Sequence record: ON529855.1
Strand: one strand, 5' to 3'
Length of the DNA: 64,000 nt
In this document: positions 27,270 to 34,883 of the stretch, piece after piece
How positions within the stretch are numbered: position 1 is the first letter of the stretch
Layout of the letters: each line of letters opens with the position of its first letter
The notes under the pieces: generated by a model
The model's input: the letters and a program-made list of their open reading frames with translations, nothing else
Databases searched by the model: none
Told to the model about the DNA's origin: nothing
Position numbers and translations under genes: made by a program

Positions 27270-27427
27270 CGGGGTCTCCTGTCGTGGTCGGCGTCTGTTC
27301 TAGCACCGATTTGTTAACAAGAGGTTAACAAAGTTCGCGGCGGCGCCGGGCGTTAACCTTAATGCGCTGTTAAGGTTAACGGCGGGCGGGCGAAAGGGAC
27401 GCCCCGGCGCGAGGCCGGGGCGCGGGG

Positions 27428-27640
27428 TCAGTAGGGCCGGTCGAGGATGCGCCAGCCGGGCTTGTCGTCGGGGCCGGTCTCCGGCTCGACCTGATAGACG
27501 GTCCAGCGCTGGCCCATCGGCGATTGCAGGGCGGCGGTGGTGTCCGGGTAGGTCTTTTCGGTCACGTCGCGGTCGTCCTTGGCGAGCCAGTCGCCGACCC
27601 ACGGTTCGCCGGTGCGGTGCAGCAGGTAAACGGCCCCCAT
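27428..27640 (-). CDS. hypothetical protein (70 aa)
   Basis: TGATG coupling. Confidence 0.65.
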   Translation of the reverse strand: MGAVYLLHRTGEPWVGDWLAKDDRDVTEKTYPDTTAALQSPMGQRWTVYQVEPETGPDDKPGWRILDRPY

Positions 27641-27852
27641 CAGACGACCGCCAGCAGGCGCGCGTGCGAGGTCTCGACCGAATAGGCCTCGATCTGGAGC
27701 CCCGGCAGGGCGGCGCGCAGTTCGTCGCGCACAGCGAGGGCTTCGGCGGGGTCTTCGGTGGTCAGGCGCAGTTCGCCGATCCGGCGGGCTGGGGCGCCCT
27801 CGGCGGCGCGGCGCGACAGTTCCAGCCGCAGGTCGTAGGGGGTGTCGGTCAT
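27640..27852 (-). CDS. hypothetical protein (70 aa)
   Basis: GGGAGA RBS; CtrA box 27895. Confidence 0.7.
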   Translation of the reverse strand: MTDTPYDLRLELSRRAAEGAPARRIGELRLTTEDPAEALAVRDELRAALPGLQIEAYSVETSHARLLAVV

Positions 27853-27905
27853 CGGTGTCTCCCGTGATTGAGCGTCCGGTATAGCCGGAAGGTCTTAACA
27901 AATCG

Positions 27906-28271
27906 TTAACGGCTGGGTGCGCTTAGGCGGGCGATGATTTCGTCGTTCGTCATCGTGTCCATCAGGTCTTGCACCTGCCGGGCCTTGTCATCCTCGACCG
28001 CCTGGGCCGCCGCCTGGGCGCGGCGATGCTCGGCCAGCGCCGCCTTGCCGGCCTCGGTGGTCTCCGGGTCGATGGTCATGTAAAGGCTGACCTCGCGGCC
28101 CTGCCGATCCACGAAGGTCAGGCTTCCAGACGGCCGCACCTTGACGGTGAACTGCGCCTTGACCAGCCGCTCGGCGGTCTCCTGACCGAAGTCCCCGCCG
28201 AAGCTGCCGCCCGCCGCCTTGACGGTGTTGTCGCTCTTGAGCCGGGTGTGATAGCCGATGTTCTTGAACAT
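27906..28271 (-). CDS. hypothetical protein (121 aa)
   Basis: AAGGAG RBS before ATG 28271; stop inside box 27895. Confidence 0.75.
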   Translation of the reverse strand: MFKNIGYHTRLKSDNTVKAAGGSFGGDFGQETAERLVKAQFTVKVRPSGSLTFVDRQGREVSLYMTIDPETTEAGKAALAEHRRAQAAAQAVEDDKARQVQDLMDTMTNDEIIARLSAPSR

Positions 28272-28282
28272 GGGGTCGCTCC

Positions 28283-28621
28283 TTAGAAGGGAATGTCGTC
28301 GTCGAACGACGGGGGCGGGGCGTAGGTCTGGGCGGCGCGCGCGCGGCGGGCGGCGTCCATCTCGGCGCGCTCCTCGTCCGTCGCACCCCAATACTCGTCG
28401 TCTTCCGGGTGCGCGCCGGGCTCGCCGCGATAGTGCGGGTTCTTCACCCAAGCGTCGAACGGGTGCAGCAGCCACTCCACGTCAGGCGCCTCGAAGCCTT
28501 CCGACTGAGCGAACCCCGACAGGGCCAGGCTCATGTATTCGCCCTGGCTCAGCGACTCCATCGCCAGAGCGTCTTCCTTTTCGCGGCGGGCCTCTTCGGC
28601 CATTTCGATCACATCGCGCAT
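28283..28621 (-). CDS. small acidic protein ending in an SSB-type tail FDDDIPF (112 aa)
   Basis: AAGGAGAGA RBS; CtrA box 28663; no recognisable OB fold. Confidence 0.75.
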   Translation of the reverse strand: MRDVIEMAEEARREKEDALAMESLSQGEYMSLALSGFAQSEGFEAPDVEWLLHPFDAWVKNPHYRGEPGAHPEDDEYWGATDEERAEMDAARRARAAQTYAPPPSFDDDIPF

Positions 28622-28864
28622 CGGCGTCTCTCCTTGTGAGCCCCCTTTATGACAGCCAGAAGTTAACAACAAGTTAACGGCGGCGCTTTTCTGCATTTTT
28701 CTTCGGGGGGGCGGCGGCGGGCGTTAACCTTAATAGCCTGTTAAGGTTAACGGGCGGCTTCCAGCCTGGGAAACGGCGTCCCGGAACGGGACGCCTCTCC
28801 TAGAAGGTGAGCAGGATGACCAGCAGGGCCAGAAAGAGGCGGGAGGCGCCGGCCAGCTTGTCGA

Positions 28865-29788: not shown

Positions 29789-30150
29789 GTTAACCTTAAC
29801 AGAGCGTTAACCTTAATGCCCCTGCCCGCTCTAGGGGTATGACCGGGTATGACCAGGTATGACCGGGTCATACCGGCGCGGATTCCCGCTGAAAATCACC
29901 CGAATTCGCCGAATTGCGCCCAAAATCGCCGGATTTTGACCCTAAATCACTGTTTTTGCTCGATTTTTCGGTATTTCAGGCCCGGCGGCGGCCGTTAACC
30001 TTAACAGGGCGTTAACCTTAACGCGGTTTTGGTTAACGGGGCATTAACCTTAACGCCTGGATGGTTAACGTGGCGTTAACCTTAACGCGGTGATGGTTAA
30101 CGGGCCGTTAACCTTGACGGCGGGAGGGTTAACGGCCCCAGGGTTAATCG
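29789..30150. repeat. Dense non-coding cluster of TTAA-N7-TTAA and GTTAACCTTAAC elements
   Basis: N7 pairs at 29796, 30001, 30033, 30065, 30097 interleaved with N2 pairs. Confidence 0.85.
29834..29875. repeat. 10-bp tandem GGTATGACCR x3 followed by its inverse GGTCATACC
   Basis: gggtatgaccgggtatgaccaggtatgaccgggtcatacc. Confidence 0.85.
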
Positions 30151-31918: not shown

Positions 31919-34642
31919 TCAGCCGAACGAGCCGATCTTGCGGGAGCCGAAGCGGGTCCGGGACCCCTTCATCCACTGGAGGGCCTGGGTCATGGCGTCC
32001 ACCTGGTCGTCGTGTGCGCCTTCGGGGAACTGCCCGACTTCCTTGGTGAAGGCGTCCATCCATTCGGCCTTCTTGGGCAGGAAGACGTCGCCGGCCGTGA
32101 TCAGCGGACTGACCTCGTCGAAGCGGAATTCCTTGGACTGGCCCTTGGGGTCGATGCCGACGATGGGGGCCGGCGCCAGGCGGCGGTGACTGGTCGTCTG
32201 CCCCCGGTTCTGGATGTAGGCGGTGCCCTGGCCCTTGTCTTCGACCAGGATCACATCGACGCCGTCCTTGACCGCCTGCTGTTCGATCATCTCGATCATG
32301 GCGTCGAACTCGACCTTCTTGCGGGTCTGGCGCAGCAGGTAATACTGCCGGTCGTTGGTCTCGCCCCAGGTCTGCACGACCGTGTAGTCGGCCCGCTGAT
32401 TGACCTTGGCGGCGCAGTCGACCGACAGGACGATGCGGCGGAAGTGGGCGCGCTTGTTCGGGATCGCCTTGCCGTGCTCGTCGACATGGCCCTCGGCGCG
32501 CTGCTTCTTCAGCGCCTCCTCGGTCAGGTGCGGGGGCCGCTCGTAATACTGGAAGCGGCCGGCGATCGAGTCGTCGGAGGTCGCGGTGGCGTTCTGCTGG
32601 TAGACCAGGGCGAAACGCTGGTAGGACCATTCGGTCTTCTTCGTCTTGAAGAAGGACAGATCGTAGTAGTCCCACAGGACGTCGCCCAGCTTGCGCCCGA
32701 GCACGTCGGTGTCCTCGTCGATGCACAGCGCCGGCGCCTCGACCTGGGTCCACTGGGCGTAGGCCGGCAGGCGCGGGTTCATCTCCATCAGGTGGCCCGT
32801 CAGGTCGTGCTCGTGGAAGCGCGTCATGATCAGGAACATCTTGCCGAAGGGCAGCATCCGCGAACCGATGTCGCCGACGAACCAGGTGTTGACCTTCTCG
32901 CGGGCGGCGGCGGATTCCGCCTCCTCGATCTTGGCGTAGGGGTCATCGACGCAGGCGAAGTTGGCGCGGAAACCGTGGACGGCCTGCCCGGTGCCCTTGG
33001 CGACATACTGTCCGCCGTAGCCGGCGATGGCCCACTGGTCGGCGGCGCGGGTGGCGTAGTCGACCACCACCTCGGGGAAGACCCGACGGAACTCCTGACC
33101 GCCGACCAGGGAGCGAATCTTCTTGGAGAACTCGTTCTCGACGAAGCGCTGGCTGTGGCCGCCGCCGATGATCTTCAGCTTGGGATTGCGGCCCAGACGC
33201 CAGGCGACGAACAGGCGCGAGGCGTAGGTCGAGTTGTGCACCACGACGCCGTCGGCGGTGAAGGTGTGGTCGCCGAACACGGTCAGGCAGCGGCACTCGC
33301 CGGAGCCGGCCGCCTCGACCATCAGCACCTTGTCCGTCACCTTCGAGCCGTAGGGCAGACGCTTGGCGACGAAGTCCGGTTCGTGGCGGCCGTGGAAGCT
33401 GATGCCGGAATCGAGCAGGCGTTCGATCGCCGGACCCTTGACGATGAGCGCGGCGCGACGGTTCGGCTGCGGGTGATCGACCACGGCGTCGACGTCGTAG
33501 CGCGCCAGCAGCTTTTGCAGGTCCTGGGCGAAGCCGACCGACTTGATCCAGGCGATCAACGTGGCCTGGCTATACTTCTTCGGCGTCTCGCCGCGCAGGC
33601 GGAAGTAGGTCGTCAGGAAGTGCTTGATCTTCTCGTCGTCGCCCCGGAACACGAACTCGGGCACGCGGCGTTCGCCGGCGCGCTTGGTCATACCGAGTAG
33701 TTCCTGGTAGGGCCGGGTCGTCTTCGAGCGCAGACGGATCAGGTGGCGCTTGTTCGCCGGGACCCAGCGGCGGGCGTAGCGGATGCCCAGAGCGTCCAGC
33801 ACGCCTTCAGCCTCCTCGACATGGGCCAGGGAGGAGAACCACATCTGGAGGTTCTGGTAGGGCGTGCCGTTCGGGGCCGTCGCGTCGGTGAAGGAGCCGA
33901 AGGCGGCGACGAAGGCCGCCAGCGCGAAGACATCCTTGGTATGACCGGAGGTGTCCTCGGGTTTTTCCGGGGTATGGCTGGTCATACCGACCACGCTCAG
34001 GTTCATGCGCGGGCGCAGGTTCTGGGCTTCGATCCAGTCGCCGTCGACCAGGAAGGGATGGTCCGGGGCCGACAGGATCGTGCGACCCTTTTCGGTCGTG
34101 ATCTTCAGCAGCGGCAGTTCGCCCTGGACGTGAACCGCCTCGACCTTGCGGCGGCGGCCGGCGTGGGTGACGACCTCCTCGCCGACTTCGATGTCGCCCA
34201 GGGCCTTGTAGGCGCCCGACCCCATCAGGACCGGGGTGGAGACGTGCAGCGGCTTGGCGTGGCCGGGCGGGCAGTTCAGGATGAAGCGATCCAGTTCGGG
34301 ATCGTTCTCGATCTTCTGGAGCAGTTCGGTCAGGTAGATGTGCCACTTCGATTCCGGCGGCTCATCGGGCGAGACGTATTCGCAGAAGGCGTTGAAGTCG
34401 TCGCGGGCCAGCGGCAGCAGCCGCTCCAGGTGACGCTTTTGCAGTTCGTCGCTCAGCCCCATCAGGGCGTCGATCTGCTGGTTGGTCTCGTGCACCCCGG
34501 TGATCTTGATGATCCCCTGGCGGGTGTTGTCGGGCAGGATCAGGCCGCGTTCCGCCGAACGCTTGGCTTCGGCCGCGAGGCTCTGGAGTTGGTTGACGGC
34601 CTGGCGCGCTTTGATGCGGTCGGCGATGATGTAGTCGGACAT
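31919..34642 (-). CDS. terL: terminase large subunit, intein-containing (907 aa precursor, about 567 aa spliced)
   Basis: Walker A PPGHAK|ST, Walker B ACVDDP, coupling motif IMTRFHE-DL-G, C-terminal nuclease VDCA...ADYT...EDKGQG...HDDQVDA. Confidence 0.95.
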   Translation of the reverse strand: MSDYIIADRIKARQAVNQLQSLAAEAKRSAERGLILPDNTRQGIIKITGVHETNQQIDALMGLSDELQKRHLERLLPLARDDFNAFCEYVSPDEPPESKWHIYLTELLQKIENDPELDRFILNCPPGHAKPLHVSTPVLMGSGAYKALGDIEVGEEVVTHAGRRRKVEAVHVQGELPLLKITTEKGRTILSAPDHPFLVDGDWIEAQNLRPRMNLSVVGMTSHTPEKPEDTSGHTKDVFALAAFVAAFGSFTDATAPNGTPYQNLQMWFSSLAHVEEAEGVLDALGIRYARRWVPANKRHLIRLRSKTTRPYQELLGMTKRAGERRVPEFVFRGDDEKIKHFLTTYFRLRGETPKKYSQATLIAWIKSVGFAQDLQKLLARYDVDAVVDHPQPNRRAALIVKGPAIERLLDSGISFHGRHEPDFVAKRLPYGSKVTDKVLMVEAAGSGECRCLTVFGDHTFTADGVVVHNSTYASRLFVAWRLGRNPKLKIIGGGHSQRFVENEFSKKIRSLVGGQEFRRVFPEVVVDYATRAADQWAIAGYGGQYVAKGTGQAVHGFRANFACVDDPYAKIEEAESAAAREKVNTWFVGDIGSRMLPFGKMFLIMTRFHEHDLTGHLMEMNPRLPAYAQWTQVEAPALCIDEDTDVLGRKLGDVLWDYYDLSFFKTKKTEWSYQRFALVYQQNATATSDDSIAGRFQYYERPPHLTEEALKKQRAEGHVDEHGKAIPNKRAHFRRIVLSVDCAAKVNQRADYTVVQTWGETNDRQYYLLRQTRKKVEFDAMIEMIEQQAVKDGVDVILVEDKGQGTAYIQNRGQTTSHRRLAPAPIVGIDPKGQSKEFRFDEVSPLITAGDVFLPKKAEWMDAFTKEVGQFPEGAHDDQVDAMTQALQWMKGSRTRFGSRKIGSFG
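33233..34252 (-). mobile_element. 340-aa intein with degenerate LAGLIDADG-type insert, inserted in the TerL Walker A motif
   Basis: Starts PLHVSTPV, block B SAPDHPF, block F CRCLTV, ends VVVHN followed by Ser; removal restores GHAKST. Confidence 0.9.
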
Positions 34643-34646
34643 GCTG

Positions 34647-34883
34647 TCAGTGGGTCTCGTGAGTGTCGAGCGCAACGGCCGCCAGCAGGTCGTCGACATG
34701 GTAGATGAGGTCCGCATCGCCGAGATGGCGCGTCAGGTGACGAATGGTGCGGAGGGTGTTTTCAAGCCGCAGGATGCGGCGGCGAAGGCGCGAGGCGCGG
34801 AGCATCAGCCCCGCCACCCCGATCAGGTAGACCGCGCTCATCGTGAGCATGGCCCACAGGAAGATCGGCGGCAGTTCAGGCAT
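34647..34883 (-). CDS. small membrane protein (78 aa)
   Basis: N-terminal TM helix; coupled between terS and terL. Confidence 0.65.
   Translation of the reverse strand: MPELPPIFLWAMLTMSAVYLIGVAGLMLRASRLRRRILRLENTLRTIRHLTRHLGDADLIYHVDDLLAAVALDTHETH

Follow-up and report, generated by a model that had tools for sequence, protein, structure and literature searches.

The hypothetical protein DOMOVOI_00560 of Brevundimonas phage vB_BpoS-Domovoi (ON529855.1; 352.7 kb, Dolichocephalovirinae, host B. pondensis) ends in the hexapeptide D-D-D-I-P-F, and comparison with its homologues indicates that selection maintains this tail, a mimic of the host SSB tip displayed on a protein that is not built on an OB fold. 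The phage tip is identical to the canonical SSB tip DDDIPF, which in bacteria is the docking motif for ExoI, RecQ, RecJ, PriA, Pol III chi, RNase HI, and Ung. We tentatively propose that the protein is a two-part hijacker of the host SSB interaction hub that would compete host enzymes off SSB-coated DNA, a reading to which we give slightly less than an even chance; that tip-bearing phages plug into or block the host DNA replication and repair hub is probable.

Gene structure and start codon

The window that we analyzed is the first 64 kb of ON529855.1, to which it is 100% identical, and its coordinates are those of the record. DOMOVOI_00560 is read from the minus strand and terminates at a TAA (28283-28285). 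The gene, its parts, and its flanking elements are:

28283..28621, minus strand: CDS of DOMOVOI_00560 including the stop codon (record annotation; homologue alignments back the start)
28286..28303, minus strand: codons of the last six residues, D-D-D-I-P-F, the putative SSB-tip mimic (family logo; host-family tip DDEIPF)
28304..28396, minus strand: linker, residues 76-106, with a short helix, helix 82-98, and a Pro-rich stretch; unconserved in the family
28397..28546, minus strand: conserved core, residues 26-75, with a helix, a beta-hairpin, and the NPHY..G..HPED loop; fold unmatched
28547..28621, minus strand: N-terminal helix, residues 1-25, present in longer family members only
28630..28635, minus strand: Shine-Dalgarno sequence AAGGAG, 8 nt before the ATG at 28621
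28663..28677, no strand assigned: TTAA-N7-TTAA (CtrA-type) box, probably part of the promoter, 42 nt ahead of the start codon
28730..28744, no strand assigned: second upstream TTAA-N7-TTAA box, from the box scan
27906..28271, minus strand: DOMOVOI_00550, the downstream gene, starting 11 nt past the DOMOVOI_00560 stop codon

From the DNA letters alone, the initial annotation had described a 112-aa acidic protein ending PPPSFDDDIPF-stop, which the open reading frame on the minus strand bears out, and had singled out a W..NPHY.G....HPE core, which is present and constitutes the invariant part of the family. We take the 112-aa start as correct because the Shine-Dalgarno sequence stands 8 nt from it and the box at 28663-28677 would fall within the longer, 137-aa reading. 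That reading, from an upstream ATG at 28696, is ruled out by where the homologues start, by the ribosome-binding site, and by the promoter-like box that it would contain.

DOMOVOI_00560 and DOMOVOI_00550 are probably co-transcribed, judging from the 11-nt gap between them, the GGAG of DOMOVOI_00550 that directly abuts the DOMOVOI_00560 stop codon, and the absence of a box between the two genes. DOMOVOI_00550 is annotated as a 'winged helix-turn-helix DNA-binding protein' and had no match in Pfam or NCBIfam.

The tail is conserved behind an unalignable linker

Among the 156 family representatives that we examined, 87 end in PF. Their tails give the logo D-D-[DE]-[ICVL]-P-F, with I (49), C (12), V (10), or L (9) at position -3, D (56) or E (21) at -4, D (56) or E (13) at -5, and D (39) at -6; positions -7 to -10 show no preference, and conservation stops sharply at -6. 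The linker between core and tip ranges from 0 to 76 residues (median 31), shows an abundance of D, E, A, and P, and can hardly be aligned at all. Identity between pairs of members is uneven along the protein, averaging 0.61 for the last six residues, 0.51 for the core, and 0.21 for the linker. The question raised with the initial annotation, whether homologues keep the tail, is thus answered positively: it is conserved across very divergent homologues, and the linker before it is not.

The same pattern was observed among close relatives. The gene is present in all seven Brevundimonas jumbo phages of the phage collection (tblastn), which fall into two clades that are 49-51% identical in the aligned core (tblastn, residues 3-78); the tail occurs in all seven phages, and both clades keep D-[DS]-D-I-P-F. 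As a control, we looked for an acidic-hydrophobic-PF ending in non-family ORFs from related loci and found it in none (0/567). With no such ending in the background, and with 87 of 156 divergent representatives retaining the tail although their linkers cannot be aligned, we conclude that it is selected and not a chance ending.

Across the whole Domovoi genome, no other ORF ends in [DE]-x-I-P-F-stop. A relaxed pattern gave D-T-F-P-F-stop at ON529855.1 285617-285634 (+) (locus L053), which is probably a chance match because a reversed-pattern control likewise gave one match. The 12 tails with Cys at -3 (e.g. DDDCPF; P0017, P0054, P0060, P0083, P0089, P0123, and others) show a residue that, to our knowledge, has not been described at this position of bacterial SSB tips. 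The tip variants (I, V, L, or C at -3; D or E at -4) may track the host's own SSB.

Tip-less members mostly stop a few residues past HPED, with short acidic ends that contain Tyr, and those of the IMG/VR set are mostly on low-GC contigs; tblastn found further tail-less relatives in Erythrobacter phage L02 and Xanthomonas phage XacN1. When tail presence was mapped on a core tree of ~50 columns, 41 changes were counted, compared with 42-55 in the shuffles listed, and a tree of this size is too weak to separate tail gains from losses. Because ~44% of members lack the tip, the core is expected to have a function of its own, and the tail-less members and the unmatched core fold (see below) seem to point to a second activity beyond tip docking.

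A widespread family found only in phages

The core of DOMOVOI_00560 matches PHROG 36991, a group without functional annotation (E 2.2e-12, residues 33-90). In a profile search of 1.84 billion cluster representatives, we recovered 820 proteins at E<=1e-3, of which 536 reach E<=1e-10, where the 820 are clusters at 50% identity whose representatives are at most 50% identical; among the 150 matches listed, all are 52-132 aa long with a single match each. IMG/VR held 45 loci with family members, and a word-based protein search gave four full-length metagenomic relatives and one short one. No bacterial or archaeal copy was found in 185,579 species genomes by pattern search and tblastn, and none in 151 host-family genomes by a profile search that had no positive control. 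The family therefore appears to be phage-only, to comprise at least 820 clusters at 50% identity, and to be previously undescribed in the literature that we found, in which no paper on a W-x2-NPHY phage family turned up.

The part shared by all members is a module of ~50 residues consisting of a helix, a hairpin, and a loop, and in DOMOVOI_00560, which carries this W-x2-NPHY module in full, its invariant residues are G42, W50, D56, W58, N61, P62, H63, Y64, G66, H71, and P72. This core is nearly invariant between 350-kb alphaproteobacterial siphoviruses and low-GC 160-kb phages. It is speculation that the invariant D56, H63, and H71, with the nearly invariant E73, form a metal site.

The core is acidic and unlike an OB fold

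DOMOVOI_00560 had no Pfam match at E<=0.1, including to PF00436 (SSB) and DUF669 (PF05037), and no NCBIfam match, and the family profile gave no match to PDB sequences at E<=10. SSB models (phrog_18154 and NCBIfam NF006533) align solely to the last 25-29 residues; the match is local and weak and pairs residues 84-112 with the model ends. An AlphaFold2 model of the 112-aa protein, built on 33 homologues (pLDDT 88), predicts helices at 4-22, 26-40, 75-79, and 82-98 and one two-stranded hairpin (50-52/58-60); the NPHY..G..HPED loop is well defined in it, and the last 14 residues have a pLDDT of 66-68. The initial annotation had stated that the tail sits on a protein with no OB fold, and this holds as far as it is testable: PF00436 is not matched, and the modeled helices and single hairpin would not make up an OB barrel.

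Searches with the predicted structure gave no relative of known function. Foldseek against the PDB found nothing significant for the whole model (best E 2.6), and a Foldseek-independent fold search (VIA-wide) gave a best Z of 4.8, confined to the N-terminal helices. A minimal, 56-aa member of the family, modeled separately to represent the core (pLDDT 84), reached a best Z of 2.5 against 48,161 chains (VIA-wide). In the viral structure library BFVD, the core model matched uncharacterised family members only, and a look-alike search of the ESM Atlas produced no usable match.

The protein is strongly acidic, with a computed pI of 4.26 and a net charge of -17. Acidity is a property of the whole family (mean pI 4.26, maximum 6.05; mean core charge -7.4), and all members and their cores are acidic. 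For DOMOVOI_00560 this charge argues against DNA binding and would fit a protein-directed or DNA-mimicking role.

Host SSB tips, candidate partners, and phage DNA machinery

A DNA pattern scan led to genomes of Phenylobacterium (Caulobacteraceae), and starting from one of them we sampled 41 genomes of this family, to which Brevundimonas also belongs under standard taxonomy. SSB was present in 41 of 41. Its tip was readable in 29 and, in this family-level comparison, read DDEIPF in 27, DDDIPF in one, and NDDIPF in one; the phage tip matches the usual host-family tip in five of six residues, with one conservative difference. Receptors for the tip are also encoded in the host family: among 16 Caulobacteraceae genomes searched, we found chi in 16, PriA in 16, and the RecQ RQC domain in 15. 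None of the 16 had a match to the exonuclease I C-terminal domain, and on this count exonuclease I is excluded from the targets in the host family. The interpretation first given to the tail stands in so far as it saw the SSB tip copied onto a protein that is not an OB-fold SSB, a copy that the conservation data show to be genuine and selected, and falls where it named exonuclease I among the enzymes that dock on the tip. Further candidate partners are RecJ, RecO, RecG, DnaG, RNase HI, and Ung.

Domovoi encodes a family-A DNA polymerase (848-aa frame), and by Pfam its genome has no Pol III alpha and no DnaB_C helicase. No PF00436 SSB was found in the genome, and no DUF669 SSB either, the latter by a search that was also empty in all control genomes. 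Because no phage-encoded SSB was found, Domovoi presumably uses the SSB of its host. No PF00436 SSB was found in the other complete tail-bearing phages searched, and one occurs in a single record among the 24 other phage records with a family member. That record encodes an SSB of 140 aa ending TEDIPF together with a tail-less family member ending HPEDDSEYR (L054:1372-1794 (-), L035:2953-3126), a pairing of a tipped phage SSB with a tail-less member that is suggestive at n = 1.

Genomic context and expression

DOMOVOI_00560 sits in a block of ~58 small minus-strand genes (window 1-29.3 kb), nearly all of them hypothetical. The window contains 59 TTAA-N7-TTAA boxes within 13-31623 and none in 31.7-64 kb, compared with 0.05 expected by chance. 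The boxes mostly show the consensus TTAACAAGAGGTTAA, and a box typically precedes a small minus-strand gene, ~40 nt from its start codon; two precede DOMOVOI_00560. TTAA-N7-TTAA is the binding motif of the host cell-cycle regulator CtrA, and Mascolo et al. found CtrA sites clustered in the direct terminal repeats of phiCbK-like phages and located in gap regions of other alphaproteobacterial phages, in three of which CtrA binds the predicted sites (PMC9437464). A short stretch of the small-gene block matches the annotated terminal repeat of Caulobacter phage CcrSC. This arrangement would fit DOMOVOI_00560 being an accessory, possibly early, host-regulated gene, and its early expression is plausible from the boxes and the position of the gene. 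A viral-metagenome run labelled 'RNA-Seq' contained identical short contigs, including one over 28254-28467, which are uninformative on transcription because the virome may contain DNA.

Four boxes with an exact 32-bp period (30001, 30033, 30065, and 30097; window 30001-30111) lie in a gene-poor gap that separates the small-gene block from the terminase and has one small annotated ORF. In the terminase itself, the frame of the large subunit (932 aa; window 31919-34717, minus strand) carries an intein/Hint insertion, with Intein_splicing and Hom_end_hint matches at residues ~160-495, the PHROG terminase match from 496, and the Pfam nuclease domain at 765-913.

The surroundings of the gene vary between phages. 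Gurke and Kikimora lack the three genes that follow DOMOVOI_00560 in Domovoi, including DOMOVOI_00550 at that position. Contigs from runs X1 and X3 (viral and sediment metagenomes; window 27400-28753) join the promoter block at 28710-28753 directly to 27469-27400; these contigs skip DOMOVOI_00560 and two downstream genes, and relatives without the cassette therefore exist. Such differences would fit cassette exchange between near-identical promoter blocks. In an all-against-all BLAST of 582 ORFs from 45 loci, no neighbor was conserved outside close relatives. The larger neighbors are mixed (PhoH, muramidase, primases, RNA ligases, ATPase, HNH), and in two metagenomic phages (L018 and L037) the gene lies beside primase or primase-helicase genes.

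A proposed hijacker of the SSB hub and its alternatives

The SSB tip recruits many replication, recombination, and repair proteins (PMC5872125, PMC3594151), and small molecules that block the partner pockets stop replication and recombination fast and kill bacteria (PMC3594151). In the model that we tentatively favor, the free C-terminal D-D-D-I-P-F, presented on a variable linker, would dock in the partner pockets that grasp the SSB tip, with Pol III chi, PriA, and RecQ among the candidates in the host family. The small acidic core would supply a second contact that adds affinity or specificity, or else a steric or DNA-like block; DNA mimicry by the core is conjecture. The net effect would be competitive, with host enzymes held off SSB-coated DNA, and the outcome would be either a shutdown of host replication restart and repair or a shielding of phage DNA intermediates, while the phage would replicate with its own family-A polymerase. 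As the pocket-blocking small molecules kill bacteria (PMC3594151), the proposed effect would be biologically potent, and blocking host SSB partners need not harm a phage that has a family-A polymerase and no Pol III alpha.

Several considerations weigh against a competitor. Cells contain many SSB tails, and a single tip binds a partner pocket weakly, so that a protein with one tail would have to be highly expressed, form oligomers, or be assisted by its core. The core function of tail-less members need not be inhibitory. A general block of SSB partners could also hit phage DNA metabolism, because a phage without its own SSB presumably uses that of its host.

The decoy that sequesters host enzymes, as the initial annotation had it, is one of at least two readings, and an adaptor that recruits them fits equally well. 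Such an adaptor would act as an SSB tail in trans: the core would attach to a DNA intermediate or to a phage protein of replication or recombination, and useful host enzymes such as primase, PriA, chi/Pol III, or RecO would be brought in by the tail, with the same docking and the opposite outcome, recruitment instead of blockade. This would suit phages that have no SSB of their own, and neither Domovoi nor the other complete tail-bearing phages searched has a PF00436 match; Domovoi has no DUF669 match either, as is also true of the control genomes. It would likewise suit the tail-less member that accompanies the SSB ending TEDIPF and the primase or primase-helicase genes beside the gene in L018 and L037, and prophage DUF669 SSBs with DDDIPF have been read as integrating into host DNA metabolism (PMC13687109). 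However, no neighboring gene is conserved across the 45 loci, a core that is near-invariant across unrelated phages is more in keeping with a conserved target in the host than with a phage partner that evolves fast, and the SSB co-occurrence is a single case among phages many of which lack PF00436 anyway. On balance the adaptor is the main rival of the competitor model, and we consider it rather unlikely.

Two further readings would make SSB itself, or the DNA it covers, the point of contact. SSB's own tail reportedly occupies its OB-fold ssDNA-binding surface in cis, and the acidic core, linker, and tip of the phage protein might together occupy this basic surface and alter SSB loading. The strong acidity of the whole protein, a tip that is the natural ligand-like element, and the high core conservation expected of a universal target all agree with a binder or modulator of host SSB, but the tail logo matches exactly the part that is recognised by partner-protein pockets, and we regard this reading as improbable. 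It is still harder to see the protein as an unconventional, non-OB ssDNA-binding protein that has retained the usual SSB tail. The layout of folded domain, linker, and tip does parallel SSB, the core has the invariant aromatics W50, W58, and Y64, and the phage has no recognisable SSB; against this stand a net charge of -17 at pI 4.3 and a family mean core charge of -7.4, a core of only ~50 residues with one hairpin, and the many tail-less members, which together make this very improbable. We find it hardly credible that the tail arose by chance or is what a past recombination with an ssb gene left behind, without function: the weak alignment of residues 84-112 to the SSB model ends could mean descent from an ssb 3' end, but the conservation data already contradict this reading. 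The tail is present in 87 of 156 divergent representatives whose linkers cannot be aligned and in all seven Brevundimonas jumbo phages, whose two clades are 49-51% identical in the aligned core, and none of the 567 background ORFs ends in this way.

Significance and comparison with known systems

The SSB tip is a shared handle for more than 12 bacterial replication, recombination, and repair proteins and is pursued as an antibiotic target. If the hijacker reading is true, phages attack or exploit the SSB hub, the conserved core with its swappable tip becomes a hub-probing tool for many bacteria, and hundreds of small phage genes now called 'hypothetical' acquire a testable function. The phage-only family, with its at least 820 clusters, might then be the first natural, protein-encoded agent against the SSB hub, with a new mini-fold that carries the copied tip and thereby disables or commandeers host enzymes of replication restart and repair across many bacterial lineages, a claim that we put forward as possible and a shade less probable than its opposite. 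A literature search with incomplete journal coverage turned up no description of a phage protein that has an SSB tip but no OB fold, and the tail architecture is unrecorded in PHROG 36991, which the core matches.

With bacterial SSB (PF00436), DOMOVOI_00560 shares the terminal hexapeptide logo, the free C-terminal Phe, the preceding acidic run, and the poorly conserved linker; unlike SSB, it has no OB fold or PF00436 match, and its folded part is acidic, ~50 residues long, and unmatched in fold. Tips on phage and prophage SSBs are already known (PMC13687109), and in the present case a phage mimics the motif of a host hub on a protein of a new family. The DUF669 SSBs of phages and prophages are likewise mobile-element proteins with a host SSB tip, read as mimicry that reaches host partners (PMC13687109), but they are OB-fold ssDNA binders, whereas DOMOVOI_00560 has neither a DUF669 nor an OB domain.

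Ugi, Ocr, and T7 gp5.9 are small, very acidic phage DNA-mimic inhibitors of host DNA enzymes. DOMOVOI_00560 resembles them as a small, very acidic phage accessory protein with host DNA enzymes as its proposed aim, and differs in that no sequence or fold similarity to them was found; we know of none of the three that carries an SSB tip. A parallel in the proposed mode of action would be the SSB-partner inhibitors of Marceau et al. (2013; PMC3594151), which are synthetic compounds that occupy the tip pockets of SSB partners. In contrast to these, DOMOVOI_00560 would compete as a natural gene product and would bring a folded domain along with the tip.
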